Assembly: GCA_038496445.1 (NCBI GenBank) | Contig: JALMLS010000455.1 | Location: 868,001-932,000 of the forward strand | Length of the DNA stretch: 64,000 bases | Source of the DNA: Trichosphaerium sp. ATCC 40318 | Lineage: Eukaryota > Protista > Tubulinea | Direction of reading: 5' to 3' | Shown here: positions 1,459 to 64,000 of the stretch, in pieces | Position numbering within the stretch: position 1 is the first letter of the stretch | Layout of the letters: each line of letters begins with the position of its first letter | Notes under the pieces: generated by a model | Seen by the model: the letters and a program-made list of their open reading frames with translations, nothing else | Databases searched by the model: none | What the model was told of the DNA's origin: nothing | Translations under genes and position numbers: made by a program

Positions 1459-2878
1459 ATGCAAGATACGTATGTCCTAGTATTTTTTATGGTGCACGTA
1501 GTATTTTAACGTTTGTTTTAGAGAACGACACGAAATTGCGTTAATTGACTTACCCGCAGAGATTTTAGTCGTGATATTAACGTTTCTGGACGATTCAAGA
1601 TTCGATGCTGCGCAAACGTGCTGGACGCTCGCAAACGTTATACATTATCACGTAGGATACGAATATATTACTATTAAATCACAGACAGCGTTTGAACTGA
1701 TTTGCGGAAGCCCAGTGAAAAATCTTTACAACACGATGGTTGCCTTCTCAACTGAGTTTGGTCGTACACTTACTGATCAAAGCTTTCAAGCTTTAAAGGG
1801 TGTTAAGAATATAGCCATTGAAGAGAACACTAAAATAACAAATAAGGCATTAGAAGCACTAGCAGGAGTACACACCATAAGGATTTGGGAGTGTCCTGGA
1901 ATATCGGACAATGGAATTAAAGCAATCGCTGGTGTTCACACAGCTGATATCTATGAATGTGATCTTATCTCTGATCAAGGATATGCCTACCTTGCAGGTG
2001 TACATACAGTAGATGTGAGTCACTCAAGTATCACAGATGTTGGCTTAAAGGCGCTGAGCGGAGCTTATTCTATAAATGTGAGGCATTGTTTGCATATAAC
2101 CGATGAAGGTATAAGTCAGCTCAAACATGTTCATGAGCTTAAACTGAAGAGTACAAAAGTGACAGATATTGGGATAGAGGCATTGGCGACAGGAAATGGG
2201 AATGTTTTGCATCAAATAGGTCTTTCAGGTACTTCTATTACAGACATTGGAGTCAAACATCTTGCGGGTATACAAAAGGTTGATTTGTCTGGTTGCAAAC
2301 ATATTACATCAAATGGTGTAAAATACTTGGCAGGTGCAAAGTATATTAACCTTGCTCGTACAAAAGTTACAGATGAAGGTATTAAAGAGTTATCTGGTGT
2401 TTTTGATATTGAATTACAAGATACGAAAGTGAGTGATGAAGGTCTTGTAGCTCTTAAAGGTGTTGAGAAAATAAACCTCAAAAACTGTATGAATATCAGT
2501 GATAAAGGTATAAAAGCTATTTCTGGTAGTGTACGTACAATCAATATATCAGGAACACATGTAACTGATGAAGGTCTTAAAGAACTTTCAGAAGCTATTG
2601 ATGTTTGTTTGAGTAATTGTGTCAAGATTACAGATCAAGGTCTTAAACATCTCACTTCAGTTACAAAACTTAATGCCTCGGATACTAATATTACTGATGT
2701 TGGGTTAATGTCACTTAAGGGTCTGAAGATGCTCACTTTATTGAATTGTGATAGTATTACAGACAATGGGATTAAAGATTTAAAGGCTCTTGTGTACTTT
2801 TATACAAATAACCAAAAAATCACAAAACAATGTACTGATTCATTACCTAATCTCCAGCGCTTTCTCAGAGATGACTGA
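1459..2878 (+). CDS. F-box/LRR (FBXL-like, AMN1-type LRR) protein
   Basis: ATG 1459, intron 1470-1521 restores frame giving MQDTERHEIALIDLPAEILVVILTFLD (F-box), then ~14 LRRs of type ITDxGLxxLxGVxxIxLxxC. Confidence 0.9.
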
Positions 2879-3737
2879 AGTTGATATCCAATACATAATA
2901 TTAGCTAAAAATATAACTTTGTTTATCAATAAATCTATTAATATTTCTCACACAGATGTACTTGTCCTATTTAAGCTTTGCGATAAAGTATTTTGTGAAA
3001 ATGTCAAGTCCAGTACTTCTATGTCATGTCCTGTTGCTTTCACAAATTTCTTGAACTCTGCAGCTGTCATAGAGAGTGTGTAGTAATTAGTCAGAGGATG
3101 AAACAAAAGCTATTGGTCATCAGTTGTAACAAGCTTCTCACTAAAATTAACTAATTTGCAAGCTTGCAGATTTTGTTTCGTTGAAAAGAGTTGGCAAACA
3201 GATCCTTTTCTTACACCTACGCACTTGTCAAATTTGTAAAGAATTATTCCAATAGATATGATTTAGTGAAATATTAAGGCTGTATTGGTATGCTGTAAAT
3301 CAATGAATCAACCTAACTTTTGTTGATGTTGTAGAAACTGCCGAACTTGCTGACTAATGTAAAAATATGATGCAAATTAAAACCAAAAACTCTACTTAAA
3401 ATAGTTTCTATCTCCCCTACTTACTTGAGATTGATGAAAGATTAATGAACGCAATATGAAAGATTGACAATGAAAAAAAGAATAAAATCACGTGCTTTGA
3501 CTTTTTACATCTATTTTGTTTCCAAAATAGTCTGTTTTATTAGCGCCTACCAGCCCCTGCTACGCTCCACCTGAGCACGTTTTCTAGCTTGTTGAGCATT
3601 TTCTATTATTTAGCGGCTCTAGTGAGGCTGACATTGCGTGTGCATTTTATCGCCAATCACGTCCCAGTTAAATCTGTCACTGTCCAGTTTTCACAATTGT
3701 ATGTCATTGACAGCTACTCATTGCTTGTTAGTGACTC

Positions 3738-4103
3738 AATAAGCCTCAAAAAGAGAAGGTTTAGGGATTTTACTTGAAACGGACTTTTGATAGCAGTTCT
3801 GATAGTTATGGATTACAATACAAAAAAGTCCTTGGTTTTATGTACCTGTAATGAGATCACTAATAGAGTGGGTCTTTGAATACATTGATCCAAGTAAGGT
3901 CTAAAACCAAGGACCAAGGATTCTCTCCTAGTCTACAATGCTAAGAAATGGCACGTGTCTGTAACATAGGGCTATACAATAAAGTTTCGTCACTAAAAAC
4001 ACTATGAACTTAGACCAAGCATTCAACAATTTTCTCGTGTACCTCAATAGTTGCCAGTACTTCTAGGGTGTTCCTAATAGCGTTCTTTTGGTCATCATTA
4101 TAC
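3738..4103 (-). pseudogene. Collapsed remnant of a paralog of the Zn2Cys6 transcription factor gene at 12256-14770
   Basis: 3738-3955 aligns with indels to 12415-12633, and 4030-4103 is nearly identical to 13220-13293; the ~580 bp between those blocks in the intact gene is missing here. Confidence 0.75.
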
Positions 4104-4448
4104 AAATGAGCTATTAGAAGGTTTTAATACTCACAGCAACGGCATTGCAACTAGGAAATGGAGTGTTAAAGTTGATGAAGAAAAGGGAAGTATACGAATA
4201 CATCCTGCTTCTGCCAGCCTGGTATTTAAAAAAACTGTAGTGAAAACTCGTAACAATTGAAAAAACTGCTACGCATGTCAGGTTTATTGGAAGCTGGCTT
4301 GAGTAGGAAATGAGTTATAAGTTGAGAAAGGTCCTACCTTTACAATGTAGCTTGGGAAATAGTGCAAAGATATTTTCATCACGTGATTTGCAATAAACGT
4401 CATACTTGTTCTCAAGTGAACAGTTGCTTCTAATTTTCCACGTAGGAC

Positions 4449-4737: not shown

Positions 4738-5474
4738 CGTAAGACTCATTTGATGCCAATCATTTCGCTCATAGTACCTGATGAAAAATACACAATAAAC
4801 TTGTTTCACACGACAAAACCAACAAGTAGTTCAGTATTATAAAACGTTTCCCTACGCGTAAATCAGCCTATTGGGAGTACTCACAGAGGTTAGAAAAAAT
4901 GGCTTGCTTTTTCAAATAGAAAAGAAGCAGTTTTCGGACTTGTTTCAAAAAGATGATTGAAAAATTGGTCATAACCTTATAACCACATCCATTTCCATAC
5001 CTTATACTTTGTATGGCGATTGCCAGCAAGTTGAACTAAATATTTCTTGGTTGTTACAACCGTGCTATAAATGCCCACAATGAAACAAAAAAGATAACCC
5101 GGTCAACCCTTAATTGGCCAAACAACTCAATACGGAACTTGTCGGTGAAAGTAAAGAACCACTCTACTGTGTCGCTACAGGTTAAATATGCAATAACGTA
5201 TACCAAGAATAACAATATAAGGAGCCAAGTACGATAGTACTCTTTTGTTGAGGGAGTTTTCTTTCCTTTTTTTTGGAACTTTCAACACGAATCCAAAAAA
5301 AAAATAAATCAAAGCTACAACGAAGACTTTGCTTTAAAGTTTTACATGGCTATTTGTTGTCTGGTTCGAATCCTGACAAGATAGTCAGTACTAAATGAAG
5401 GGGAGTGGTAGCATAAAAGTCTAGTGAAATTGCAATGAGCTGTGATCTTTGTGTTTGCATAGTAGATTACTCAC

Positions 5475-8400
5475 TTATTTCAATGCTAACACATCTGCAG
5501 GATTGTCTGTGACTGAAACATTCTTGTATTTCTTTTTGAGAAACTTGGCACTCGCTTTGTTACCTAGATTCAAAATATGAGCAATGTTTAACATCAATGC
5601 AATCGATTTTTGTGTGACACACGTACCACAAAACACAAGAATAGGTATTTTACTCCATTTCTTATTTTGCTTAATTATACTTTTCACCAAGTGCTCTGCT
5701 GCATTCTCATCTCCATCACCTTTACGGTACCTGTTTGTTATAATACGTAGCCTGTTGTTACAATATCCTTTAAACTTTTGAAGCCATGCCAATACCTCTG
5801 AGGATGACTTCATTTCTATAACCTTTTGGAGTGTTAGTACCCTTCAACCTTCAACATATTATATTTCTTTGTGCCTCTGTTTTCCTTGGCCGAGCTTTTA
5901 ATAGCTTTACAATATTTTTGTTCTCGTCAGAGACGTTATCATCAACCCATAAGATGAGACACTTTGCATCTCTGTACTTGGTGTTGAACTGTGATAGATT
6001 AATAGTATTTGTGCTTTGATAATAAACAAGGTATCTCGGGAGAATCTTATCAAAAAAGTTAAATAAATAATAATTATGGCAAAAGTACTTGTTTGTTGGA
6101 GAATACAACAATCTCATCAAAGTCTGGCTTTTCGGTTTTTTTACAAGGATGGCAATTGCGAGCACTATTTGTTTTTTTAACAATAGCATAGTGTGAATCG
6201 TATCCATCCTATTTTTACATTGTTAGCCTAATTAATGGGTAATTTCAATGGATTACCTTGCATCCTTTTCCACAGAGACTGTTTGGATCACTAGGGTTTG
6301 GAACTTCGGTAGCTGGATAGGGTTTTCCCATCATCACCCACGATATCAACATACAAGGAGTATCTGTCTTGTCCCACTCAGCAAACACCTTTCCTACAAC
6401 AGCTCTATTAACTTCAATCACATGACTATAGACACATACCATAGTCTGGGTATTGTGTAAAGTAGATACCCTTCCCTTGGAAACACAGTAAGTTAAACAT
6501 GTACATGTTGAAAACAAAAGGTATTTTAAATGTTGGTACCAAAGAATCCTGGATCTTTCTGGTCTTTTAACTTTCCTGGCTCTCTAAAGTTGTGGGTCGC
6601 AATTAAGAAACTGATGTGCTATGTATGCGCATAAGTGGCATACTTAATATGATGATAGTACCTCTTTTGCGCCATGAAACCCAGCAATGAGATTGATTTG
6701 CTCATTACCAGAAACAAGGAGAATATAGTTTTTCAAATGGTTCATTGTCCGTTCTTGTGCTTCTAGTTTATCTTTATCGACTGTATTCAATTTGCTATCG
6801 CTAATATCTAAATGATGGATTAATAAGAATTGCTATAAAATGTTCTATCACTTACCTGAAGATTTAGATTGAAGTACTTTAGCAACAAGCTGTTCATATT
6901 TTTTTTGGAATGCAGCTTCAAGCGTTTGATTGTCAAAGAAAACAATCTTTTCCAGTGTAAAGAACGACTCACTCTCAGTACCCATAAACTTGTAGAACAT
7001 ATTGCGAGCTCTCAAGTACTCGTCACAACGTTCCTGTTTAGATCAGTCAGTAAAGATGATATCAAGTTGGAAAAGGTGTCAGACATACTTTGGTTGTTTC
7101 GTGGCTTGTGAGAGAAGTCCATCTCAAACCTGGATACTTTTTCTTATTCTCTTTCCAATCGCCTTGTTTTAAAAATTGCTCGCCATGAAGACTGCTCCAC
7201 AACCTATTGTGGCTTATTGGCAATACAGGAAAGCCCTTTTTCAAGTGAGAGGCAGTGACAATATCTCCTAGCAGATAGTTGTAAGTATAGTTGACCCTTC
7301 ACATTGTGGTTACCTGTTTGTTCAAACGTATATGGAGGTTTTGAAGCTTCAACAACACGGCCGTTTTGAATACTAACAGGGCATAGCTGTACTTGTTTAC
7401 CTTCCAATGGTGCTAAGTACGAACCAATACATTTCTAAACATATGTGAATGTGTTCAATACTTAACTATGATATTTGCTATCGTACCTTCCATAACCACG
7501 GCACTTTGCCTCTGATGACAATATTTATGGCAATGTTATTGTAGTACAGCACAATTGTGTTACCATAAAAATCATTCAATACAATCAGATTCGAAAATAG
7601 GCGGAACTCTTTGTTTCGGAACTCTAGATATTTTGTTAGTATAGCTAAAACGTTATTTTGGTGCTTACCTCTTAATCTTGTTTGCAAGTTATTAAATACG
7701 TCTATGGAAGTTTCACTGACTTGGTATGCTAAGAACTTTGAAGTGGTTGATAGGTGCTCATATATGTCAGGAAGTGACTAAAGTGTTTAGCAATATTAAC
7801 AACAATAAACAAGAAAACAAAGAAAAAATTGAGAAAAAACAAAGAGAACACGTGTTTCAAACGTACTATTTTTTGGGTATTTGGATTTTTTTTGATTGTT
7901 TCAATCGTCTTGGTCTCAAAGCTATCATCTTTTTTAGGTATGAATGATAGCAACCTCCACTCTGTTGGCAACTTGCTCAAGTAAAACACTTCAGAAAATA
8001 CGGATAATTCCTTGTTTCCTTTTTTAACTAGATTGATACTGGACTCCTTTTCTGTCACAGGCGGAAAGTATAACATATCAGCTTTTGGCAATAACGAAAT
8101 TATGATGTATCCGTCTGAGCCATAAACTTTCTAACAACAGTAAGTAAATAATGTACCAATAACAAAAACATGTTACTAAGTTACCTTTTCTTCTTTTGTC
8201 AAGCAAACACAAAACGACAGTTCAACCAAGAATCTCATTACTTGCTTCACTTGCTTCATTTGCTTGTCTTCATCCTTTGTACGCAGTTCAAATACTTTCG
8301 AGATGCGGTAATGGGCCTCTGCATCTGTGAATACAGCACAGTGATTTCGAGACTCATCATTCAGCAGTCTACTCAAATGTTCTGTAGGAGCAACAAAGAC

Positions 8401-11400
8401 ACTCATAATACGAGATAGAATCGGAGGGTCTAAACACAACATATATGATGACTAGAAGATAATTAAATCAAGTTCAAGCTCATAGAAAACGTTTTAGGCT
8501 AGCAGAAGTACCTCGTCAAACATAATGCTACCAATAGAGTGAAGGTAATTTAACGAAGCAACCAACTCAATTGGAGCCATTTTACAAGTCTTGGGCAATA
8601 GTTTGATGGCTTGTTCACTATTTCATGTTATTCATCAGCGTTTCTGTAAATACAATCAACGTACAATGATATGATGTTACCCTCCAATCTATCTTTGCTC
8701 ACAACTGCTTTCGTCAAGGCTTTTTGTACTTCGTAATAAAGAGTTGGTACTTTTGGGTATTGCGACTTTATGTATTTTGCCTCACGCTTCAATTTCTTCA
8801 CAAGATCGGGAACACCTGTTAAAACGGCATTAGGATACTTGCTTAGTTTAACATAAATCAAGTACCATCAAAGCAAAATGTAAGGTACATTGACGACATC
8901 ATATTGAAGGAGGAAAGCGCTTTTTTAGTAGCTTCTAAGTCTCCTGCATGAACATCCAACTTGGATCCATATACTATCACTGAGTAGAGTTTTGCGTCTT
9001 GGCCACGCAAAAACTTACTAAGGGTATGAACCCAGTGTTTAAGGTGCTTCTTTTGTTCCATAATTGATAGTGATAAGTCAATCTAAAATAAATATTGATA
9101 AGAAAGTGATAGTGATGTGTTGTTAGGATCTTACAACAATGATGTAAACGGCAAATTGTTTAGTGAAAAAATACTTGTGAAGTCCTTTGTATTCCATCTG
9201 TCCAGCAAAGTCTAACACAGAGAACGATAAATCGCCATATCTACATAAGTCAGTATAACATCTAGATATTTTTATCAAACAAACTCACAATAGAGAAGAG
9301 GTATCAAAGCCAATTGTTGAATCAACGCTATCATCTTTTTCACCTGACAACTTTCTTACTAAAGTTGTCTTACCTAATATTTATGTCAATGTATAAGCAC
9401 AAAGTTTTATTGTACCTGATCCTCCGTGACCCACAACCAACAATTTTGCATTAAGTTTCTTTATGTATTCATATTCTGTGTGATCCATACCGGAAGCAAT
9501 AGTTGATGGGTTTTTTTGAGGGGACAACGATCTGTAATATTCAGCTTGAAATTGTTCCTTTGTAATGTCGTTCATCTTTATTGGTATCACACGTGCTCCT
9601 GGAATCTCACGTGCTATAGTTGTAACTATGTTATTAATGTGAGCACATATTGATAAATAAGACATGTTATTGGTACCTTGATGTAATGATATATCAGGGT
9701 CAGGTAAACATAGATCATAAACAAATATCACATCACTCAATAAATTGCGTCTTCTTGTCCATTCAACAAAGTGAATGAAATCGTCTCTTGAAAGGATCTC
9801 AAAAATTAAGGATCTTTGATGTGATATTTGGATAAGGTTATTCAGAGAAATAAACATGGAAGCTACAAACCAGTCATTCAGCTTCTTGAAATACTTCAAT
9901 TCTTCTGAATATACAGCCACATCTTCAATGTCCATGGATGTACTTTTAGTGCAAATTTTTGCCATTTTGAAAAAAGAGAGTTGATTGGGTTCGTCAGAAA
10001 TCTTGGTATCTGCCGGCTTAAGAAACTTATCTGGCCGATAAAACTCTCCTTTTCCTGTTCTCTTGCCATCCACAACATCGCCAATGTATTTGTTACCATT
10101 TGGCCAATAAAACTCTCCTTTCCCTGTTCTCTTATCATCCACAAAGTCGCCAATGTATTTGGTACCATTTGGCCAATAAAATTCTCCCTTTCCTGTTCTC
10201 TTGCCATCCACAAAGTCACCGATGTATTTGTTACCATTTGGCCAATAATACTCTCCTTTTCCTATCATCTTGCCATCCACAAAGTCACCAATGTATTTGG
10301 TATCACCTAGCATATGATACTCTCCTTTTCCTGTTCTCTTGCCATCCACAAAGTCGCCAATGTATTTGTTACCATTTGGCCAATAATACTCTCCTTTTCC
10401 TATCATCTTGTCATCCACAAAGTCACCAATGTATTTGGTACCACCTAGCATATAAAGCTCTCCTTTTCCTGTTCTCTTGCCATCCACAAAGTAACCGATG
10501 TATTTGGTACCATTTGGCCAATAATACTCTCCTTTTCCTGTTCTCTTATCATCCACAAAGCCACCGATGTATGTGGCACCATCTGGCATATAATACTCTC
10601 CCTTTCCTGTTTTTTTGTCATCCACAAAGTCACCGATGTATTTGGTACCATTTGGCCAATAATACTCTCCTTTTCCTGTTCTCTTGTCGTCCACAAAGTC
10701 ACCGATGTATTTGTTACCATTTGGCCAATAAAACTCTCCTTTTCCAGTAAACTTGCCATCCACAAAGTCACCAATGTATTTGGTATCATTTAGCCAATAA
10801 AACTCTCCTTTTCCTGTTCGCTTGCCATTCACAAAGTTGCCAATGTATTTGGTACCATTTGGCCAATAGATCTCTCCTTTTCCTGCCATCTTGTCATCCA
10901 CAAAGTCACCGATGTATTTGTTACCATCTGACCAATAAAACTCTCCTTTTCCTGTTCTCTTATCATCTACAAAGTCGCCAATGTATTTGTTACCATTTGG
11001 CCAATAAAACTCTCCTTTTCCTGCCATCTTGTCATCCACAAAGTCACCGATGTATTTGTTACCATCTGACCAATAAAACCCTCCCTTTCCTGTTCTCTTA
11101 TCATTCACAAAGTCGCCAATGTATTTGTTACCATTTGGCCAATAATACTCTCCTTTTCCTATCATCTTGCCATCCACAAAGTCACCAATGTATGTGGTAC
11201 CACCTAGCATATAAAGCTCTCCTTTTCCGGTTATCTTGCCATCCACAAAGTCACCAATGTATGTGGTACCATTTTCATGGCCTATGTATTGTTGGTAATC
11301 ATCACAAAAAACACTCTCTTACCACTAAAATTGTTATCACCATACCATGTCTGTTCGCCTTTGCCATGTCTGATACCATTTTTTAAAGTCCCTTTGTAAA

Positions 11401-11521
11401 AACAACCTTCATCCAGAATGAATATTTTACCTACATAATGACTATTGATAAACTAACAACTTCAAAAAAAAAGCCGCTTACCAAAAACCAAAAGATCGCC
11501 ACACACGGATTTACTTTCCAT
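5475..11521 (-). CDS. MORN-repeat / Roc GTPase / COR / PARP-like ART / receiver-like protein, copy 1 (multi-exon)
   Basis: Spliced translation: ~19 MORN repeats; KLLVVGHGGSGKTTL (G1), STIG (G2), LDFAGQMEY (G3), GSKLD (G4); COR-like LNYLHSIGSI...LCLDPPILSRIM; GFHG, FGKGIYFT, DEIVVF...ILPRYLVYY (PARP H-Y-E); LILWVDD...IITN...IPILVFCG (REC-like). Stops I checked fall inside GT-AG introns. Confidence 0.88.
10030..11272 (-). repeat. Coding tandem array of 18 near-identical 69-bp MORN units
   Basis: 23-aa unit xxGxKYIGDFVDxKxxGKGExY(W/M) repeated 18 times with very high DNA identity. Confidence 0.95.
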
Positions 11522-12255
11522 TGTTTACGATCAACCGCAAATAACACAAAACTACTGACTGTGCTTTGTAGTTCGCTAAAGAAAAAAAAACGTTAGCTAA
11601 GCCGAAAAAAAATTCACAAAAAATAAATGTGCACTGAACGTTTACGAAAAAAAAAGTCTTTTCCAACGCTGGCTAAATAACTTGTACATAGTAAAACGAT
11701 GTGTTTAAATGCTTGTACGTACGTTAAAAGCGTCTAAGTTGGTCACGTGAGGATATACGCCAAAACCCTACAGAGCGTCAGAATGGAGTTTGCATCGCCC
11801 GCCACGTAACAAGAAGTGAAGCGCGACAGAGTTCTAAAATACTAAACCACGCAAAACCACAAGACGAAGATAAGTGTTTAAATTTTCAAGCGTACCTTGA
11901 ATAAGACTTCAAACCAATAGAGCGCGTTTGCTGTTGTGGTTACGTGTAATCACGTGATTTGTTTACTAAAGTTGACGGCTCGACCAAAACGGTTCACGCT
12001 CTGTGTACTAAATTATTGAACGCGTCTATGTCGTATAAGGTTCCACCATACTCCAGAGTGAGTGTGTTAATACGTTTTATATAACGTAGTGGTTAATACC
12101 GACATATAGGGATTTATTTTCGAAGCTATTGTTTGTTCATTCGAAAATAGTCACTTCGGAGTTTTTTTTGAAAAAGGAAATATCCTGTTTACGCCATTTT
12201 TATTACGCTGTTTACGCGTAGGGAAACGTTTTATAATACTCATATTCCCAAACTT

Positions 12256-14770
12256 TCAAAAAAACTTGAAAGGCGAGTGAAAACTCTTGTCTTGAAACTT
12301 GGTCGTTAGTTGTAGTGTAGATTTACAAGTTGCATTAAGTGCAGATTTTCTTTTGTGAAAGAAAGACACACTTGCTTCAGTAAGATCATCTGACATGAGA
12401 TGAGTAGTGTTCCACATAAGCCTCAAACAGAAAAGTCGCAGGATTTTACATGAACCAGACTTTTGATACACAGGTGGCAACTCAGAGAGTAACAGTTCTG
12501 ATAGTTATGCTTACTACACAAAACTGTTTTGGTATTATGTGGTAGATGGGGTCTTTGGGTACATTGATCCAAGTAAGGTCCGAACTGAGGGTCACGGATT
12601 CTATCGTATTTCTGCAATGCTAAGCAATGGCACAAGACATAGTTGAATACAGTTTTATTTGAGTTGACTTACATTACCCTTGTCTCTTATCTACGCCTAC
12701 ATCTCTGCAGGACATAGTTTATTGTAAGTACCATTCTTTATGTCCTATCAATAATAAATTCAAGGGCCTTGCAAGTATACAAAACAAATAAACGTACCAG
12801 CAAGTTATTCGAAATTACAGGATAAATACTGCTTAGTTTATCTAAAGTTTGGTGAACTGATGAGATGTGTTCTCCTTTAATGTTGTACTCTTTGTATGTA
12901 TGTAAAGCCTCACCAATGGTAAAAGCGATAAACGGGTATAGAGGTCGATTACCAAACTTGTTCTTAAGCACACAGTCAATGATAAAATCTGCTGAATTCA
13001 GTGATTGCTTTATCAATCCAAGTTCCATATAAATTCTCGTTGCTGTTCCATTACAGTAAAACTTACTAATCGGAGGATCTTCCTCCATACTCTCTGCAAT
13101 ATTTAGAGCTTCTTCAATATAGTTTAAAATATTTTCACGTGTAATTGATGAAGGATGAATAAGGTAGAGCTCGCACTAAAAACAATAAGTACTTAAACCA
13201 AACTTGTTGCATTCAAAAGTTTTCTCGTGTACCTCAATAGTTGCCAGTACTTCTAGGATGTTCCTAATAGCGTTCTTTTGGTCATAATTATACAGTGTTG
13301 AAGTACGCAGAGACTCCAAAGTTGACAAAAGAATAGCTTTGGCTTCATTCGCCTCAACAATAAAGTTGTTTGAAGAGTTCCTAGATGTAGACACTTGTAG
13401 TCGTATTCTTAAGGTGCAAAGTGCTTTTGAGAAAGCGGTTTGCTGTTTACTATCTCTGGCTTAACGCAAAATACGTTAGTGAAAGTACAACTACCCTTGC
13501 ATGTCCACGTGATATCCATTCTCATCAAAAATAATTTTTTTTGTGAAGAAAATAGTACCTTGAAACCGAAGCGCTTTTACAGCGCTTAGAAATTTACAAA
13601 TACAATCAGCCATTTGAACACACTGTCTGGCTTTTTGAAGTTCATTTATAGCTACCAAGTACATTGATAGTAATATTAAACCAACTAAATGAAAGTTGCA
13701 TGAGTAAAGTGCATAAACATACAAACTATTTTCTTACTTGCTGTGTCAAAGTTTGGTTTATCAATCAGAGACTCCTTACACTCAATAGCAAAAGTTCCAA
13801 AGTCTCGTGATCTCTCCATGTTTTTAAAATATAGCTGTTGTAGTGCTAATATTGAATATGTCTGAAAATTCCTTGGAGATACTGTAATACAATGAGTTAG
13901 TTGATCTTAACAAGTAATTAAAAAAATCTACTCAAAATTATTTTGAACGGCAAAGACTTAGATTGATTGATTGATCTTTGCACAAAGAGTAAAAGGCTAT
14001 GTTATATATGGGCATTAATGTTCAGCATGTTTCTACTATTTCAGACCGCGTAGATGTCACGTAAATATGTTACTTACCTTTCCTTGTTTTAAACTCATTC
14101 ATGTCAACTCCTGAGAGCAAAAATGATGGTAGATCTGCACCAATAAAACCAAGGAAGCTATCAATACATGTATGAACAATAAGACTGTTGTTTATCCTTG
14201 CTGTTGATATCGAAAAGGCGTTACTCTGAGATAGAAATTAGGAAACAATCCTTCTAGCTTAGTTTCAGTGAAGTTTTTTTTCAAAAAATGACGTTTCGTG
14301 CGGGATGTTTTTTTGTTGAAGTGTAAAACACGTGCCGATATTATTTTACGTTTTTTAGAATAACTATTAGCGTATGTAGAGTAAGACGCCATTATTTCAT
14401 TTTTAAGTAGTTGTTGAGCGGCTTTTTCTTTTTTTATCTTATTTTCAAGTGAATTCACCTTTTCTTTCAATGACAATGTCTTCGAGCCTACATGTAGCAA
14501 TACTATATTAATAAAATACCAATAACACGTTCTTAAAAGAATAATGATCTACAAGAGATAATAATTCTCTGTAAGCACCTTTTTTCCTTCCTCTACGCTT
14601 AGGTTTAACATATACACATTGTACTTTATATTTTAGGCAGTTCGCTAGGAAAGATTGTCAAATGAAGCTATCACAGGGTCTACAAACGATTTAAAAAGGT
14701 ATGGATCCATACAGCAAGGAGTTTGTTTGTTACATCTAATATGTCGACCTCTGCAAGAAGAACACGACAT
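12256..14770 (-). CDS. Zn(II)2Cys6 binuclear-cluster transcription factor (multi-exon)
   Basis: Spliced N-terminus MSCSSCRGRHIRCNKQTPCSNCLKYKVQCVYVKPKRRGRKK matches C-x2-C-x6-C-x5-C-x2-C-x6-C plus basic tail; helical downstream exons. Confidence 0.8.
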
Positions 14771-21427: not shown

Positions 21428-22384
21428 CTATAGCCGTAATTGATAGATAGTGTGTGCACCTGCCAATGCCTTCAAACCTTCATCTGTTACATTTGTATAT
21501 GCTAAATCAATCTCATGTACACCTGCCAATGCTGCAATGCCATTGTCTGTTATTGACTCACAATAACGTAGGCTGATAGTGTGCACACCTGCCAATGCAT
21601 TCAAACCTTCATCTGTTACATTTGTAAATGATAAACTAATCTCATGTACACCTGCCAATGCTGCAATGCCATTGTCTGTTATTGACTTACAACAACGTAG
21701 GTTGATAGTGTACACACCTGCCAATGCCTTCAAACCTTCATCTGTTACATTTGTAAATGATAAATTAATCTCATGTACACCTGCCAATGCTGCAATGCCA
21801 TTGTCTGTTATTGACTTACAACAATATAGGTTGATAGTGTGCACACCTGCCAATGCCTTCAAACCTTCATCTGTTACATTTGTATATGCTAAATCAATCT
21901 CATGTACACCTGCCAATGCCGCAATGCCATTGTCTGTTATTGACTTACAACTATGTAGGTTGATAGTGTGCACACCTGCCAATGCCTTCAAACCTTCATC
22001 TGTTACATTTGTAAATGATAAACTAATCTCATGTACACCTGCCAATGCCGCAATGCCATTGTCTGTTATTGACTTACAACTATGTAGGTTGATAGTGTGC
22101 ACACCTGCCAATGCTGCAATAATGTCGTTTGGTATCTTACATCGGCTGAGATCAATAGTCGTATTGTGGAGTAATGGACTACCAGAAAGCATCTGAACTG
22201 TATTTGTGTTTTTAGTACGGATATGACCATACCCAACGTGGTTGTGAACAATATCTCGTAAAAGATGGCACGTTTGGGCTGTACGAAGCGTATACGACCC
22301 TTGTTTGAGAATATGGACTATTAACTCAATTGGTAGCGCAATAAGGTCGAATACTTGGTTGAACTGTGTTTGTTGTTTTTCCAT
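21428..22384 (-). CDS. Intronless F-box/LRR protein with a recent tandem LRR expansion
   Basis: ATG 22384; LIALPIELIVHIL F-box; paralogous to 1459-2878 (AQTC..L..(I/V).H.HVGY); LRR pairs repeated. Confidence 0.9.
   Translation of the reverse strand: MEKQQTQFNQVFDLIALPIELIVHILKQGSYTLRTAQTCHLLRDIVHNHVGYGHIRTKNTNTVQMLSGSPLLHNTTIDLSRCKIPNDIIAALAGVHTINLHSCKSITDNGIAALAGVHEISLSFTNVTDEGLKALAGVHTINLHSCKSITDNGIAALAGVHEIDLAYTNVTDEGLKALAGVHTINLYCCKSITDNGIAALAGVHEINLSFTNVTDEGLKALAGVYTINLRCCKSITDNGIAALAGVHEISLSFTNVTDEGLNALAGVHTISLRYCESITDNGIAALAGVHEIDLAYTNVTDEGLKALAGAHTIYQLRL
21450..22120 (-). repeat. 147-bp (49-aa, two-LRR) coding tandem repeat, ~4.5 copies
   Basis: Unit HTINLxxCKSITDNGIAALAGVHEIxLxxTNVTDEGLKALAGV with near-identical DNA. 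Confidence 0.92.
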
Positions 22385-22699
22385 TGTATGATCACGGTTG
22401 TCTTCGTTAAGCAAATGTTATAAAGTAAAAGGAGAACTTGAGAGATTAAATGCGTTTAGCTGGGTGATATTAAACACTTAAGGAGCTCTATCAGAAAATT
22501 CACTGCAGAAGAATTACGTGTAAACGACAAGTCATAGTACTTGTACGCAACCGTTCAAGTGTTCGTGGCTATCGCAGAAAGTGTAAGCAAATAAGACTAC
22601 AGGCACGCAAGAGATTTACGATGTACAATAAAATGGTTTAAAGCGCTAATCTTTTTTGATACTACTATTCTGTAAGAAATAACCGTTTTTTCGCACAGT

Positions 22700-23613: not shown

Positions 23614-23902
23614 ATAGGGTTTGCACTACTTTCAAAAAGAGGATTCTATTGTATTTCAATAAATCACGTGCTTGGCTTTTTCAAAAACAGGTCATTAATT
23701 GGCCAAACAGCCATGTGTTAAAGTAAAATTGCGATTTTTAAAGTGGTTACAAAAATCACATAACAAACTGGTCGTAAAACACTTTTTTGGAAGCGGTTCA
23801 AGGGTAAGTGTATTACCTGTATTCGAAATCATACAAATCATTTTATTTTGTACTCGCCTAAATGAAGTGGCAATACTAATATGAGTTGAAGGAAAATTAA
23901 CA

Positions 23903-24949
23903 ATGACATCAAAGCCTGGGCTATACTACCAAAGCAATATTGCAACCATTAGTATACTGGACATTCCACGCGACATTCAACGTTATATAACCACATTTAA
24001 TGAGGAAACGTTTAAAAAATATCACATGCTATCTAAACAAGCTTCAATGAACACCCAATACAATAAGAATCTTGAAAGAAATGGGAACTGGATAGAGTGG
24101 TTTAAATCAGGTAGAATACATAAACAGTATTTTTATGTTGATGGAAAGAAGAATGGTGTCCACAAAGAATGGACTAAGAGTGGACAGCTCCACAAACAAT
24201 GTGGATATGTCAATGATGGGCGTAATGGTGTGTGTAAATTGTGGTGTGAGAATGGAATGGTTGCACAAGCTATCTTTGTTGATGATATAGCGAATGGTGA
24301 ATTCAAACAGTGGTACCCATGTGGAAATTTATTCACAAAAAATACATACGTTAATAACAAAAAGAATGGTGAACACATAGAATGGCATGAGAATGGAAAT
24401 TTACTTAAACAATGTACCTACATTGATGATAAATTAAATGGCGATTACAAAGAGTGGCATGAGAATGGAAATTTGGTTAAACAATGTACATATGTTGATG
24501 ATAAAATAAATGGCAAGCATAAACAATGGTACAAGCTTGGTCGCAGGGAGTGTTGGTTTAGAAATGGTAAATGGAATGGAAGTTACAAAGAATGGTATGA
24601 TAATGGACAACTTTTGCAATCACGTCAGTATGTTGATGGTAACGGACATGGTGAAGTCAATTATTGGCATCCGAATGGAATATTATCCCATCAATATACT
24701 CTTATTCATGGTAAAAAGAGCGGTGAATATAAAGGCTGGTATGCTAATGGAATATTATCTTCACAATGGACCTACATTGACAATAAAATGAATGGTGAAT
24801 ACAAAGAGTGGCATGAGAATGGAAATTTGTTTATACAATGTACATACCTTGATGGTAAAAAGAATGGTGATTACAAAGAGTGGCAAGAAAACACACAGCT
24901 CCTAAAACTATGTGTATGTGAATGGCATGTTAAGATCAACACTATTTAG
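23903..24949 (+). CDS. Intronless F-box-like + MORN-variant (YwqK/MORN_2-type) repeat protein, copy A; last ~10 codons frameshifted
   Basis: SILDIPRDIQRYITTF then repeats of NGxYKEWHENGxLxxQCTY; a 2-nt loss in a TG run near 24910-24920 relative to copy B, whose stop aligns to 24960-24962. Confidence 0.88.
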   Translation: MTSKPGLYYQSNIATISILDIPRDIQRYITTFNEETFKKYHMLSKQASMNTQYNKNLERNGNWIEWFKSGRIHKQYFYVDGKKNGVHKEWTKSGQLHKQCGYVNDGRNGVCKLWCENGMVAQAIFVDDIANGEFKQWYPCGNLFTKNTYVNNKKNGEHIEWHENGNLLKQCTYIDDKLNGDYKEWHENGNLVKQCTYVDDKINGKHKQWYKLGRRECWFRNGKWNGSYKEWYDNGQLLQSRQYVDGNGHGEVNYWHPNGILSHQYTLIHGKKSGEYKGWYANGILSSQWTYIDNKMNGEYKEWHENGNLFIQCTYLDGKKNGDYKEWQENTQLLKLCVCEWHVKINTI

Positions 24950-25146
24950 TTTAGAAGAATGATAGCATTGCCGAATGTTGCCTGTTGTTTATAAAATTTA
25001 ACTAGCATTAAGCCATTTCCATTGTTTTTTTTCTGATAATTTGAAATGGAGCTTTTTAATAAAGTTGTCACTGAAGGTTAAAAGGACACCGAATAGGTTA
25101 CCTTGTATTTTACCTGATCTGATAGACATGACTCGCCTTCACAACT

Positions 25147-27989: not shown

Positions 27990-28493
27990 TGTTACAACAT
28001 TGAATGTGGAGGTTAAAGAGTCTACAACTTTCCCATACATTGCTTCAAATTCAGCTTAATCACTTCCAGTTTGTGTAAGCTACCACCAAAGAAGGGCGCA
28101 CGTGATAGGACAATGAACAAGTTAATATTTGATGTCATAGCATGTTATACATGGGCATCAAACAAGGTCATTTCGAGTCGCCACACCATTAAAAACAGCG
28201 CTCACGTGCTCATGGATACAAAAAATTAGAACAGAACATAGGTATTTTGCAAGAGCAACTTTGTACATGGCAAGATGGACAGTGTAAACAGAGGCATGGT
28301 GTTAATCTAAGCACTCAGCGGTATTATGTAAACAATGCTATCAAAGGACTACAATAGTTTCCTGTTGAACTTCGTTAGAGTTTATTGAGGGCTACATAGA
28401 AACTTTGGCAAGTTTTCATTTTTTTTAGCCGTTTAAGTTAACTATCGAGATTTTTGTGTATCAAGTGACTACTTTGTCGGTACACTCTCGAAA

Positions 28494-32461: not shown

Positions 32462-32737
32462 TAATAATAAAGAGAACAAATTTAATCGAGTGCTGTTCTA
32501 GTAGTGTTAAAAAGTCGACGGACATACTTTCGGGTTGTGTCGTTTAACATCACTGTTCTCTACAGAAAGGGTTTTATGTCAGCAGGTTATTAGTATTTGC
32601 TGGTCATTGCAGAAGTGCTAATGTTATCACGTGTTTTCATATTCAAAAATCCTTTTTCATTAATACCTCTTTCCGCAAAATTACTTGCGAGTTTAACGAA
32701 CAGGACAAACTTAAAAGAAACGCCTATCTGTAGAAGA

Positions 32738-49194: not shown

Positions 49195-52100
49195 TTACAA
49201 AGCTAATACATCTGCAGGACTGTCTGTGACTGAAACATTCTTGTATTTCTTTTTGAGGTACTTGACACTTGATTTATCTCCTAGAATAAACGGGATGAGT
49301 ATGCTACGATTGTTGTTTGTAAAACACATACCACAAAACACAAGAATAGGTATTTTACTCCATTTCTTATTTTGCGTAATTATACTTTTCACCAAGTGCT
49401 CTGCTGCATTCTCATCTCCATCACCTTTACGGTACCTGTTTGTTATAATACGTAGCCTGTTGTTACAATATCCTTTAAACTTTTGAAGCCATCCCAAAAC
49501 CTCTGAGGATGACATCATTTCCATAACCTTGTAGATTTTTGTTAGTAACCCTGCAACACCTGTGATATCTGATGTGCCTCGGTTTTCTTAGGACGAGCTT
49601 TTAATAGCTTCACAATCTCTTTGTTCTCATTGGATAAGTTATCATCAACCCATAAGATGAGACACTTTGCATCTCTGTACTTGATGTTGAACTGTTCCAG
49701 ATTGATAGTATTTATGCTTTGATAATAAACAAGGTATCTCGGAAGAATCTGTTAAAACAGAAAGTTAGAGGAAAACTGCCAAAAGGAGTTATTAACAAGA
49801 ATGTGAGGTTCATACTTGTTTGTTGGAGAATACAACAATTTCATCAAAGTCTGGTTTTTCATGTTTTTTACAAGGATAGCAAACGCGAGCACTTCCTTGT
49901 TTTTTAACAATGGCATAGTGTGAATCGTATCCATCCTATTTTTACATTGTTACACCACAACTAATGTGTAATTTCAATGGATTACCTTGCATCCTTTTCC
50001 ATACAGGCTGTTTGAATTGTTTGGGCTTGGAACCTCAGTAGCTGGATAGGGGTTTCCCATCATAACCCACGATATCAACATACAAGGAGTATCTGTCTTT
50101 TCCCACTCAGCATACACCTTTCCTACAACAGCTCTATTAACTCCAATATACATGACATTATAGACAAGTACCGTAATCAGGATATTGTGTAAAGTAGATA
50201 CCATTCCCTTTGTAATACAGTAAATTAGACATGTGCACATTGATAGCAACAGTATTTTAAACATTGTACCAAAGAATCCTTCATCTTTCTTGTCTTTTGA
50301 TTTTTTTGGGTCTCTGAAGTTGTTTGTTGCAATTAAGAAACTGGTATCCTATGCGTGCGTATAAGTAGCATACTTAATATGATGACAGTACCTGTGTTGT
50401 ACCATGAAACCCACCAATGAGATTGATTTGCTCATTACCAGAAACACGAAGAGTGTAGTTTTTCAAATGGTTCATTGTACGTTCTTGTGCTTCAAGTTTG
50501 TTTTTATCTATGCTGCCATTGTGTGAATCTAGATCACAGATTAGTATGATGAGTGACTATTTTTACACATGACGTACTTGAGTTTTTTGCATGTAGTACT
50601 TTGGAAACGAGATCATTATATTTTTCTTGGAATGCAGCTTCAAGTGTTTGATTGTCAAAGAATACAATCTTTTCAAGTTTAAAGAACGACTCACTCTCAG
50701 TACCCATAAACTTGTAAAACATATTGCGAGCTCTCAAGTACTCATCACAACGCTCCTTTTTAGATCAGTCAGCAAAGACGAAATAGCAAGTCAGAAAGTG
50801 TTACACATACTTTGGTTGTTTCGTTGCTTGTGAGAGAAGTCCATCTCAAACCCGGATACCTGATCATGTCTTCTTTCCAATCACCTTGTGTTAAGAATTG
50901 TTCACCATGGAGACTGCTCCAAAAGCTATTTTGGTTTTTTGACAATACAGGAAAACCTTCTTTCAAATGACACAAAGTGATGATGTCTCCTATAAATAGT
51001 TGGTGGCGTAGGCAAGTTCATATGGGGTTACCTGTTTGTTCAAACTTATATGGAGGTTTTTTAGCAACAACAATATGACCGCTTTGAATGCTTACAGGGC
51101 ATAGTTGAACTTGGGTACCTTCCAACAGTTCTAAGTATGATCCAATACATTTCTAAACTTATGTGAATGTTTTCAATACTTAAACATCATGCTGCTATCG
51201 TACCTTCCATAACCATGGCACCTTGCCTCTGATTACAATATTTACAGTGTGGTTATTGTAGTACATCACAATTGTGTTGCCATAAAAGTCATTCAATACA
51301 ATCAGATTTGAAAATAGGCGGAACTCTTTGTTTTGGAACTCTGTGATTTGCATTGTAAGTACAACATAAAAAGTTAGTTGTATGTACCCCTTAACCTTGT
51401 TTGTAAGGTATTAAACACATCTATTGATATTTCTGGGGAGGCAAATTGATAAGCCAAGAACTTTGGTACGGTTGATATGTGCTCATATTTACCAGGAAGT
51501 GACTATGCAAATTAAAAAAGAACAAACCAAAAAAACTTCCCATGGAAAAACCCTGAATGAACACATGTTTAAACGTACTATTGTTTGAGTCTTGTCATTT
51601 TTCTTGATTGTTTTAATCGTCTTGATTACAAACCTATTGTCTTTTGTAGGTATGAATGATAGTAACCTCCACTTTGTTGGCAACTTGCTCAAGTAAAACA
51701 CGTCAGAAAATATGGATAATTCCTCCTTTGTGTGTTTAACTAAATCAATACTGGACTCCTTTTCTGTCATTGGTGGAAAGTACAACATATCAGCTTTTGG
51801 CAATAATGAAATTATGATGTATCCATCTGAGCCGTACACTTTCTAAACCACTGTAAGTGGATAACATAATGTAAACTAATAAACAAGTGTTACCTTTTCT
51901 TCTCTTGTCAAGCGAACACAAAATGACAGTTCAACCAAGAATCTCATCACTTGCTTCACTTCAGCCATTGTACAGTTTTTGAATATCCTTGAGATGCGGT
52001 AATGAGCCTCTGCATAAGTGAATACAGCACAGTGATTTCGAGACTTGTCATTCAATAGTCTGTTCAGGTGTTCTGTAGGAGCAACAAAGACACTCATAAT

Positions 52101-54596
52101 ACGAGATAGAATGGGAGGGTCTAAACACAACATGTACGATGACTAGAGGATAATTAAATCAACTTCAAGTGTATAAAAAAGGTTGTAGGCAAGCAGTACC
52201 TCATCAAACATAATACTACCAATAGAGTGAAGGTAATTTAACGAGGCAACCAACTCAATTGGAGCCATTTTACAAGTTTCAGGTAATAGTTTGATGACTT
52301 GTTCACTATGGAAATGTTATTCATCTGTGTGATACTTCAACGTACATGGATATGATGTTACCCTTCAATCTATCTTTTTTCACAACTGCTTTCTTTAATG
52401 CTTTTTGTACTTTGTCATAAAGAGTTGGTACTTTTGGGTATTGTGACTTCATGTATTTTGCCTGACGCTTCAGTTGCTTCTCAAGATCAGGGACACCTTT
52501 TGAAACATTAGTATACTTGCTTATATTAATCTTAAATAACAGGTACCATCTAAGCAAAACACAAGGTACACTGACGATTTCATCTGATTGAAAGAGTAAA
52601 GCACTTTTTTATTGGCTTCGAAGTCTCCAGAACAGATGTCCAACTTGGATCCAAAAACAATGACTGAGTAGAATGTTGCATCTTGTCCATACAGAACCTT
52701 GCTAAGGGTATGAACCCAGTGCTTAAGGTGCTTCTTTTGTTCCACAATTGATAGTGATAAGTCAATCTAAAATAAATATTGAGAAAGGTTTGAACACGTG
52801 GTTTTTAGGATCTTACAACAATGACGTAAATGGCAAGTTGTTTTGCGAAAAAATACTTGTGAAGTCCTTTGTATTCCATCTGTCCAGCAAAGTCTAAAAC
52901 AGTGAATGATAAATCACCATATCTAAAACAAACGTCAGCATAACATCTCCTATCATTAAACACACAATAGAGAAGAGGTATCAAAGCCAACTGTTGAATC
53001 AACACTGTCATCTTTTTCGCCTGACAATTTCCTTACTAAAGTTGTCTTTCCTAATATTTACGTCAATGTAAAGAAACTCACATTGTATGAACGTACCTGC
53101 TCCTCCATGACCCACAACCAACAATTTTGCTTTCAATTGCTTCGTGTATTCATAATATGCGTGATCTATACCAGAAGCAACAATTGCTGGTTTTTTTTGA
53201 CTGAATCCAGAATATACAGCTTGAAATTCTTTTCTCGATGTATTGTGTATGTCTATTGGTATCACACGTGCCCCTGGGACCTCACGTGCTTCAGCGGTGA
53301 CTAATAGTGTTATAAGTATAAAGGATACAAGGGAGTTGTTGGTATGTACCTTGATGTAATGACATCTCAGGATCACATGCACAAATATCATAAACAAATA
53401 CCATATCACAACCGCAATTGTTGTTGTGTACATCTTTGTGCAGTTTTAAGTTTTTAACAATTTCAGCAAATGTCTCCTTTGAGTGGATGATAAAAATATA
53501 ACGTCCGTTACAAGTTATCATTTTGAAACCGTCTAGTAAAGGTGAATCAATCATATGTACTTCACACTTGCTAGTTATCCAGTCAACCATCTTGTTGAAA
53601 TACTTCCTTTCTACATACAAAGCTTTAATATCCTCGTATGACTTATCCTTAGAATTGTTACGAATAGATGGCATTCTGTTCATGTTTTTAACAAACGTGT
53701 CTTGATTTGGTGTTCCAGAAATCTTGCCTTCTTCTATTTTAAGAAACTTATTGTTTGAGAAATACCCTATTTCTTTATATCCACTTGCTGAATAAAACTC
53801 TCCAATACCATTCCTCTTTCCATTCTCAAATTGGCCAATATACTTGTCGCCATTAGGCCAATACAACTCTCCAAACCCTGACATCTTACTATTGACAAAG
53901 TTGCCACTGTATTTTTTACCACTCGGCCAATAATACTCTCCAGAACCACTCCTCCTTCCATCCAAAAATTCACCAGTGTATACCTCTCCATTTACAAAAA
54001 CCATCTTCCCAGTGCCTGAACTCTTGCCATCCACAAAGGTGCCAAAATAATTTTTACTCTTCTTCAAATTAGAGTGTGTTGAGATAATTTCTTTTTTGCT
54101 CTTCACAGAGGCTGTTGGTTTTTTTAAACGAGAAGAACCAAAGTTAAAATTATTCTCAACTGGCCAATAAAACGCTCCACTACCTGTTCTTATACCATCT
54201 AAAAAGTCACCAATGTATTTACTACCATCTCGCCAGCACAACTCTCCATGCCCTGACATCTTACCATCCACAAAGTCGCCATCGTATGTGCTACCATCAG
54301 CCCAATACAACTTTCCACGCCCTGTCATCTTACCATCCAAAAAGTCACCAATGTACTTTTTAACCTTCTGTCGGTCTTCTACGTCTTGTTTGTACCATAT
54401 TTGTTTACCTTTACCATGTCTGATACCCGATAAGCTTTTTATAGTTCCTGTGTAAAAACAACCCTCTTCAAGGATGACAAGTAGTTTTTTACCTAGCGTT
54501 CAAAGAATGAATAAAAACTGTAACGCAACAAATAAATCCCGACTTACGATAAACCAAAAGAGTATCATTATCATCAGCGCATTTACTATTGGCCAT
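49195..54596 (-). CDS. MORN / Roc / COR / PARP-like / receiver-like protein, copy 2
   Basis: Colinear with copy 1 with largely shared intron positions; ~8 diverged MORN repeats; GHGGAGKTTL, LDFAGQMEY, GFHGT, DEIVVF, LILWVDD. Confidence 0.88.
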
Positions 54597-62230: not shown

Positions 62231-62369
62231 TCAGTCAAGTTAGTCAACTAGGTATTTCGTCAGTAATTGTTCGCTCTGGAAGCACTTTATTCGTGTTGAA
62301 GTACAACCATTGGAGCACTTTTTACGAGAAAAATAACTGACGAAATAAGTAGCTGACTAACTTGACTGA
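62231..62369. mobile_element. 139-bp foldback/MITE-like element
   Basis: 38-bp terminal inverted repeat TCAGTCAAGTTAGTCA(A/G)CTA..TATTTCGTCAGT with 4 mismatches; internal TGG(A)AGCACTTT direct repeat; no clear TSD. Confidence 0.7.
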
Positions 62370-62429: not shown

Positions 62430-64000
62430 CTATAACATGTCCATCAAGAGATTGAAAGTCCGGTATTGAGTCTGTAAAGAGAGTGTTCTGTATTCCGATT
62501 TTCTGAAACCGTCAACTCCAGTAAATCAGAAAATCACGTGACAAACAGAAATTAAAACTGGTTATTTGTTTGAGGTGCTATTAGCGGTACGTCTGTAACT
62601 TTTGAACATACACATAGATTCTCAAGGGCTACTTTTATCCCTAAGCGTTGTGAACTTCCCTTTCGTTACATGCGCTCAGCGCGACTAAAACCTAATGACT
62701 GATGCTCTTGTAGAGTTTTCAGCGTTACCTTTAACGAAAACCCTTTTATTACCGCGTTAGATACTTTCAAGGTACTAATGGGGTTTGTTACTACATATTA
62801 ACAACAGACTCAACTTTTTTTTTGCTTGTCGCAGCATCGTTTTCTTCTTTTGCTAATTTTTTCTTTTCTTAGATTCAAAGTCGGGTTTGTAGTCTTCGTT
62901 TTAAACAATGGACAATAGTAAATGCGCTGATGATAATGACACTCTTTTGGTTTATCGTAAGTCGGGTTTTATTTGTCACGTTTGTTGCGTTACAGTTTTT
63001 ATTCATTCTTTGAACGCTAGGTAAAAAACTACTTGTCATCCTTGAAGAGGGTTGTTTTTACACAGGAACTATAAAAAGCTTATCGGGTATCAGACATGGT
63101 AAAGGTATACAAATATGGTACAAACAAGGTGTAGAATACCGACAGAAGGTTAAAATGTACATTGGCCACTATTTAGATGGTAAGATGACAGGGCGTGGAA
63201 AGTTGTATTGGGTTGATGGTAGCACATATGATGGAGACTTCTTGGATGGTAAGATGTCAGGGCATGGAGAGTTGTGCTGGCGAGATGGTAGTAAATACAT
63301 TGGTGACTTTTTAGATGGTATGAGAACAGGTAGTGGAGCGTTTTATTGGCCAGTTGAGAATAATTTTACCTTTGGTTCTTCTCGTTTAAAAAAAGCAATT
63401 GTCTCAACAGACTCTGATTTGAGGAATAAAAAATATGTTGGCAAATTTGTGGATGGCAAGAGTTCAGGCACTGGGAAGATGGTTTTCGTAAATGGAGAGA
63501 TATACGCTGGCGAGTTTTTGGATGGAAGGAGGAGAGATGGTTCTGGAGAGTATTATTGGCCGAGTGGTAAAAAATACAGTGGCAACTTTATCAATAGTGA
63601 GATGTCAGGGTTTGGAGAGTTGTGTTGGCCTAATGGCGACAAGTATATTGGCCAATTTGAGAATGGAAAGAGGAATGGTATTGGAGAGTTTTATTCAGCA
63701 AGTGGATATAAAGAAATAGGGTATTTCTCAAACAATAAGTTTCTTAAAATAGAAGAAGGCAAGATTTCTGGAACACCAAATCAAGACACGTTTGTTAAAA
63801 ACATGAACAGAATGCCATCTATTCGTATCAATTCTAAGGATAAGTCATACGAGGATATTAAAGCTGTGGTGTATGTAGAAAGGAAGTATTTCAAAAAAGT
63901 GATTGACTGGATAACTAGCAAGTGTGAAATTCATATGATTGATTCACCTTTACTAGACGGTTTCAAAATGATAAATTGTAAAGACAGTTATATGTTTATC
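62430..64000 (+). repeat. Inverted duplicate of ~53480-55050 (promoter + 5' part of copy 2)
   Basis: Near-identical promoter, exon 1, intron 1 and MORN exon in reverse complement. Confidence 0.92.
62908..64000 (+). CDS. MORN-Roco-PARP family copy 3, 5' part (runs off the window)
   Basis: ATG 62908, intron 62957-63020, exon 2 open to the window end; close paralog of copy 2. Missing from the ORF track because it has no stop in the window. Confidence 0.85.

Follow-up and report, generated by a model that had tools for sequence, protein, structure and literature searches.

The subject of this analysis is a gene, hereafter gene A, on the reverse strand of a 64,000-nucleotide stretch of the Trichosphaerium sp. 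ATCC 40318 genome (the window; contig JALMLS010000455.1, positions 868,001 to 932,000). Gene A (5475..11521; ATG at 11521, stop codon at 5475-5477) comprises 24 exons and 23 short introns and encodes a protein of about 1618 amino acids (aa), in which a MORN-repeat array is followed by an alpha/beta domain, a Roc GTPase, a COR region (COR-A and COR-B), a PARP-type ADP-ribosyltransferase (ART) and a pseudo-receiver. The results showed that the gene family to which it belongs is real, expressed and constrained, and that it belongs to the Roco family, has a new output module and occurs in many microbial eukaryotes. That gene A encodes one protein with this architecture is nearly certain. As to function, the sequence evidence gives a probability of roughly 0.5 to the reading that this Roco switch with a PARP-type ART output is used as an NLR-like intracellular defence receptor.

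Gene structure, expression and single-frame relatives

Gene A was rebuilt by hand through six-frame translation, and the joined protein served for the frame check and for the alignment with its full paralogue in the window, gene B, while the queries of all homology searches were single exons, natural reading frames or database proteins. The frame stays open across 22 hand-placed introns of 41-89 nucleotides (nt), of which 21 are GT-AG and one is GC-AG, and a 23rd intron of 63 nt (5625-5563, in frame) was revealed by RNA contigs. The GC-AG intron (5874-5823) is kept in gene B at 49577-49528, and RNA contigs show a matching net skip of 52 nt. These contigs come from four public runs, evidently of RNA, and the joints cited are among those listed: the predicted introns 7313-7268, 7088-7034, 6855-6808, 6661-6619, 6539-6476, 6439-6394, 6256-6209, 6088-6046, and 5874-5823 are all lacking from the contigs, and one joint lies near 9676-9626. 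Most of the contigs are 85-99% alike and they come mostly from paralogues, which indicates that several paralogues are expressed. The top match of the last exon of gene A, at 92% identity, is a 302-aa protein from the transcriptome of the same strain (P0001). The published genome description gives 37.7% GC and introns that average 75 nt (PMC10521059), and the window agrees with both.

A metagenome scan with the ART yielded 37 loci (designated by L numbers), and Roc was located upstream of the ART in all of those with enough 5' DNA (L012, L013/14, L016, L017, L021/22, L023/24, L026, L027, L035, and L043); the GC content of the Roc-bearing loci ranges from 32% to 62%. Introns are present in most metagenomic loci, which suggests that their hosts are eukaryotic. 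Outside the metagenomes, Mastigamoeba balamuthi m51a1_g4989 carries Roc, COR, ART and receiver collinear with gene A. The core that the first-pass annotation of this DNA, which was made from the letters alone, had described is thus not confined to this genome but is shared by Mastigamoeba and about ten metagenomic loci. The locus L012 is a single intronless open reading frame (ORF) of 950 aa with the order Roc-COR-ART-receiver, and L016 (93-4580) is a single intronless ORF of 1496 codons (about 1485 aa) with a Rap-like Ras domain, leucine-rich repeats (LRR), Roc, COR, ART and receiver; the exons of gene A map in order onto both. In L009 the frame is stop-free from Roc to the ART Tyr, and stops were seen in L001 and L004. 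Because of the single-frame relatives L012, L016, and L009, the Roc-COR-ART fusion is regarded as a real protein design, and the alternative that Roc-COR and ART are separate genes was ruled out, since relatives hold both in one stop-free frame. The open frame, the RNA joints and the single-ORF relatives thus bear out the proposal of a single polypeptide with MORN, Roc, COR, ART and receiver; all five proposed domains stand, to which a pre-Roc alpha/beta domain of about 170 aa and the 23rd intron, both missing from the first-pass annotation, have to be added. As a separate observation, the Rap-like Ras domain of L016 is apparently intact, which would place two GTPases in one chain.

The Roc-COR switch

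The Roc GTPase of gene A (8780..9450, reverse strand) was recognized by its G1-G4 motifs, by Pfam Roc and by a family profile. The motifs read GHGGSG|KT for G1 (split by the intron 9415-9374), STIG for G2, DFAGQ for G3, and GSKLD for G4, and the G3 exon matches Pfam Roc with E 5e-4 and, in PDB, has LRRK2 as its first-ranked though weak match. Pfam gave no COR or PARP match on single exons of gene A, which are too short for it, and relatives were therefore used to detect both. The COR region (7314..8780, reverse strand; COR-A then COR-B) was accordingly located through the Pfam matches of relatives and through a family Roc-COR profile built on the relatives' Roc-COR sequences. The best PDB match of this profile is LRRK2 (E 6e-22), together with 4wnr and 3dpu, and LRRK2 and prokaryotic Rocos all rank above Rabs. 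Nine exons each of genes A and B are collinear on the profile, four at E <=0.002 and the others weaker, and the COR exons 8451-8185 and 7623-7487 of gene A score 42 and 14 bits, respectively. Pfam Roc was matched by 8/8 relatives scanned, while COR-A (E 1e-6) and COR-B (E 2e-7) were matched by 2/8 relatives each, the COR-A of L016 being below the Pfam cut-off; the Mastigamoeba relative is assigned by Atlas at 0.95 to COR-A/COR-B clusters. By way of the collinear relatives, COR directly follows Roc, as in the Roco family. The profile check proposed earlier thus gave direct matches for MORN and Roc, but for COR and PARP it succeeded through relatives and the paralogue protein and not on single exons. 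No kinase was matched after COR in any family member scanned, ART and receiver standing in that place, and no STAND (NACHT/NB-ARC) ATPase was matched in the members scanned, in which the NTPase is Roc.

The ART domain

The ART of gene A (6020..7033, reverse strand) is of the PARP-type His-Tyr-Glu (H-Y-E) class. Its His (6674-6676), Tyr (6462-6464), and Glu (6113-6115) were all located as the first-pass annotation had stated, and are intact in genes A and B. The Pfam PARP (PF00644) cut-off of 26.7 bits is passed by the transcriptome protein P0001, which aligns exon by exon with gene A (38 bits), and by the relatives P0014, P0036, and L012 (40, 55, and 35 bits, respectively). The best PDB match is ZAP/PARP13, which is weak (E 0.085). 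AlphaFold gave low confidence for the ART half of the transcriptome protein (predicted local distance difference test, pLDDT, <50; shallow alignment), and the fold call is therefore based on the profile evidence. The triad is complete in A, B, P0001, P0036, L003, L005, L012, L016, and L035. When aligned by eye, the residues that we take to be the equivalents of PARP1 Lys903/Ser904 are Tyr-Gly, and the Tyr907-equivalent is Phe in gene A. Because of the Tyr-Gly pair and because the nearest solved domain is ZAP/PARP13, we infer that the ART would act as a mono-ADP-ribosyltransferase or NADase and not as a polymerase, and it is probable that the domain is active in both A and B. The ART tree is mostly without resolution and was not used for any order of events.

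The pseudo-receiver

The C-terminal domain of gene A (5478..5964, reverse strand) has the (beta/alpha)5 fold of CheY, as supported by AlphaFold, Foldseek, and Atlas. The model has a pLDDT >90 and the Foldseek matches are Rcp1 (E 4e-4), CheY, and NtrX, so that for this region the proposed Foldseek check came out in favour of a CheY-type receiver. When the receiver sites were placed by alignment and secondary structure, the Thr/Ser after strand 4 was found to be Cys and there is no Lys after strand 5; the domain is classed as a pseudo-receiver because the phospho-acceptor Asp after strand 3 is replaced by Asn. It carries a family-specific motif, NRYR..DG, in which Arg and Asp are invariant. Similar receiver folds are found on rotifer ART proteins. 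Beyond this family, this same type of pseudo-receiver stands at the end of DENN and RhoGAP proteins and one Clydonella protein holds two (P0019, P0028, and P0007), which would make up an unnamed eukaryotic receiver-like family.

The N-terminus, the paralogues and selection

The MORN array of gene A (10020..11261, reverse strand) consists of 18 near-identical units of 69 bp (23 aa), all in one exon, and an additional degenerate unit (11323-11430, reverse strand) lies upstream of it in exon 2; Pfam PF02493 matches 16 MORN stretches with E 7e-86. In comparison to these 18 units, genes B and C have 8-9 diverged units. Among the relatives, most have LRR at the N-terminus and L016 has Ras and LRR, while MORN was seen only in the Trichosphaerium genome; by sequence, MORN is a lineage-specific accessory and not a defining part of the family. 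The pre-Roc domain (9441..9965, reverse strand) is a fast-evolving, doubly wound alpha/beta domain of about 170 aa with a degenerate small-GTPase or receiver-like fold, on which Pfam and PDB sequence searches gave no match. Its model is of low confidence (pLDDT 53), and the comparison of this weak model gave a tie (VIA Z 7.6 for the HflX GTPase vs 7.5 for a receiver), so that the domain is possibly a degenerate GTPase as judged from the model.

Gene B (49195..54596, reverse strand) is a full paralogue of about 1422 aa with an open frame and H-Y-E intact, its introns, the GC-AG one included, are at the same positions and phases as in gene A, and the two proteins share 80.5% aa identity beyond the MORN part. 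Gene C (62908..64000, forward strand) leaves the window before Roc and is an inverted copy of the first part of gene B at about 90% DNA identity. Of the three copies that had been reported, A and B are therefore full, and C is represented within the window only by MORN and the pre-Roc region. The ratio of nonsynonymous to synonymous substitution rates (dN/dS) between A and B is 0.28 for Roc, 0.22 for COR, 0.29 for ART, and 0.30 for the receiver, in comparison to 0.75 for the pre-Roc exon (exon 4), 0.70 for the N-terminal exon between B and C, and 0.54 overall for the MORN units of gene A inter se. The core is thus under purifying selection, and the N-terminus of the gene appears, from these ratios, relaxed or diversifying. 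No claim of positive selection is made for the MORN positions, since the overall value is 0.54 and the value of 1.6 at variable sites is circular. The receiver exon of A (5626-5822) and that of B (49333-49527) are near-identical at silent sites (dS 0.03, against about 0.35 in other parts), and the RNA contigs are close matches to this exon; this near-identity makes gene conversion among paralogues likely at this exon.

Gene A is enclosed by a perfect 30-bp inverted repeat, with the left arm at 4833..4862 (forward strand) and the right arm at 12211..12240 (reverse strand), for which 0.01 occurrences are expected by chance. No target-site duplication was found at the repeat, and neither similar arms at genes B or C nor a second copy in the 64-kb window was found, so that no transposon is postulated around gene A. 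The genes flanking the repeat (about 3700-4150 and 12400-13300) are paralogous fragments with the same orientation.

Comparison with known systems

The nearest eukaryotic counterparts are the Roco proteins of group 2 (LRRK1/LRRK2, Dictyostelium Roco4/GbpC) and DAPK1, which likewise have Roc followed by COR-A/COR-B, N-terminal repeats, and an enzyme after COR; the difference is that a PARP-type ART and a pseudo-receiver take the place of kinase/WD40 here, and that the N-terminal repeats are MORN in the Trichosphaerium genome. The architecture is not among the three groups of a Roco review, in which PARP and MORN are unmentioned (PMC6337361). In prokaryotes, counter-invader proteins with LRR, AP-GTPase, COR and a variable effector have been described with at least 24 effectors, none of which is named as ART (Kaur et al. 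2021, PMC8195603). They resemble the present family in the repeat sensor, the Roc-COR switch, the C-terminal effector, and the multiple paralogues, but the present family is eukaryotic and intron-rich, with its effector fixed as ART plus receiver. In an exact-string check, for which one file was truncated, COR+PARP, COR+ART, COR+REC, and MORN+ were absent from the roughly 2,700 AP-GTPase+COR entries listed in the same paper. The LRR-ROCO proteins of brown algae, which are proposed immune receptors with one exon per LRR, exon shuffling, and mostly no enzyme output (some have peptidase or DUF900; PMC11378527), are likewise Rocos that have expanded and whose repeat array varies, while the near-identical MORN units here all share one exon, and COR is followed by an ART. 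Neither the text of that paper nor a PARP distribution survey mentions a Roco-ART architecture.

The ART itself resembles the clade-3-like mono-ARTs (PARP7/12/13/14) in passing the PF00644 cut-off, in its H-Y-E class, and in having ZAP/PARP13 as nearest solved domain, a likeness of profile and motif; it differs in lacking WWE, macro, zinc-finger or WGR domains and in being fused to Roc-COR. Sensor-switch-effector logic with an NAD+-using output is also found in NLR/STAND receptors with NAD+-consuming effectors (TIR, SIR2), but the switch here is a Roc GTPase and not a STAND ATPase, so that the relation is one of analogy and not of membership. The open literature (figures and paywalled papers lay outside the search) yielded no Roco protein that carries a PARP or ART domain, in line with the first-pass annotation, which knew of no prior description. 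The repeat-Roc-COR-effector design is thus already known, while the ART-receiver output appears new, because no ART effector is named in Kaur et al. 2021 (PMC8195603) or the open literature. It adds an enzyme class to the Roco outputs and joins two fields, those of LRRK2-type switches and of ADP-ribosylation.

No relative was found in viral contigs, and neither one partial phage match of 26% nor one weak match to a bacterial metagenome-assembled genome points to a version in viruses or prokaryotes. A word-seeded homolog search with the Mastigamoeba protein returned only its self-match, which says nothing on absence, and NCBIfam gave small-GTPase and LRR-type matches only.

Possible function

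In Roco biochemistry, COR dimerisation shifts with the nucleotide cycle of Roc, by which the enzyme of that chain is regulated (PMC6337361). The ART would be released or restrained in the same way as the kinases of LRRK2 or DAPK1, through a COR-mediated dimerisation that follows the GTP/GDP cycle, and we consider such control by GTP somewhat likely. The pseudo-receiver, which is not phosphorylatable at the usual Asp, probably forms a lid over the ART, of an allosteric or docking kind. In the two steps with the least support, the MORN or LRR repeats would bind invader molecules or report damage, and the triggered ADP-ribosylation or NAD+ loss would restrict giant viruses or intracellular bacteria.

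Defence is favoured because of the paralogue expansion, the swappable repeat N-terminus, the repeated catalytic decay, and the contact of the host with giant viruses, with which Trichosphaerium has heavy gene traffic (PMC10521059). The prokaryotic counter-invader proteins (PMC8195603) and the brown-algal Roco candidates (PMC11378527) are published precedents that also speak for it. The sensor-switch-effector design put forward in the first-pass annotation fits the constrained core and the variable N-terminus, but such a design had already been published (PMC8195603, PMC11378527) and MORN is not what defines it. If the defence reading is true, the protein would be a GTPase-based counterpart of NLRs that uses ADP-ribosylation or the depletion of NAD+ to signal or to kill. 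It would then also be a PARP-family enzyme under the cis control of a GTPase, of which no report was found, and would offer a handle on the poorly known resistance of amoebae to giant viruses and intracellular bacteria. The broader proposal, for which we can argue only tentatively, is that microbial eukaryotes widely possess an undescribed class of intracellular immune receptors, built from exchangeable LRR/MORN sensors and a PARP-type enzyme that is gated by Roc-COR. The two compact relatives without introns (950 and about 1485 aa) make it possible to ask directly whether any enzyme that follows Roc-COR comes under its control, by a simple NAD+ read-out in place of a kinase assay.

Several observations weigh against a defence receptor with an active ART output. 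PADLOC gave no match. The bacterial system draws on 24 interchangeable effectors, while the present family keeps one and the same output domain throughout. The His is lost in at least three lineages, being Trp in the L019-L041 clade and Arg in L017/L043 and Mastigamoeba, and the catalytic Glu is Gln in the Mastigamoeba relative. The dN/dS of 1.6 in the MORN array of gene A is confined to sites picked by how variable they are, a circular choice, and the unit pairs compared are not independent. The transcript check proposed earlier succeeded in that the RNA contigs skip the predicted introns, but in the four runs no contig spanning Roc to ART was found among the joints listed. Finally, the presence of the pseudo-receiver on DENN and RhoGAP proteins points to small-GTPase signalling, and Dictyostelium Rocos act in development (PMC6337361).

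The last two points lead to an alternative that we regard as unlikely but well worth weighing, namely housekeeping signalling, in which the Roco protein would link small-GTPase and membrane cues to the ADP-ribosylation of proteins of trafficking or the cytoskeleton, much as Rab cues lead to Rab phosphorylation through LRRK2, and MORN would serve for localisation or as a scaffold. The Rap-like Ras domain at the start of L016, the possible degenerate GTPase before Roc in gene A, and the constancy of the core architecture across distant lineages also agree with it, while the many paralogues, the change in repeat number (18 vs 8-9), and the swapped N-termini are more typical of conflict genes, and the catalytic decay in several lineages likewise argues against it. 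It is improbable that the ART is mainly an NAD+/ADP-ribose-binding or self-modifying regulatory module, following the pseudo-enzyme logic of ZAP, with the Roc-COR scaffold or the pseudo-receiver as the real output: such a role would account for the retention of the domain where the His is lost and for the Phe of gene A, but the triad is intact in the many members given above and the dN/dS of the ART is 0.29. Passive spread of an ordinary single-function gene by mobile-element capture or segmental duplication, which would make the expansion uninformative on immunity, is very improbable, since the inverted repeat around gene A, the inverted duplication of B and C, and the apparent gene conversion of the last A/B exon are offset by the missing target-site duplication, by the lack of similar arms at B or C, and by paralogues that are spliced, expressed, and under purifying selection.

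Other features of the window

A second ART type is present in the window in an intron-rich gene (28366-32480, forward strand) that encodes ankyrin repeats, then a PARP-like domain in which His, Tyr, and Glu motifs occur, and finally a coiled-coil tail. An inverted pair of MORN_2-repeat genes (23700-25000, forward strand, and 34500-36000, reverse strand) shares about 56% protein identity. Two related intronless LRR genes lie at 1502-2878 (forward strand) and 21428-22414 (reverse strand), one of which has a weak F-box match and the second of which contains near-identical 129-bp repeats; among the giant-virus-like genes of the Trichosphaerium genome, those with F-box and MORN are the most frequent (PMC10521059). 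A Diaphanous-type formin with GBD, FH3, and FH2 (44424-47078, forward strand) adjoins gene B, a proline-rich ORF with extensin-like repeats is located at 40400-41300 (reverse strand), and an imperfect palindrome of about 140 bp (62231-62369) lies upstream of gene C.

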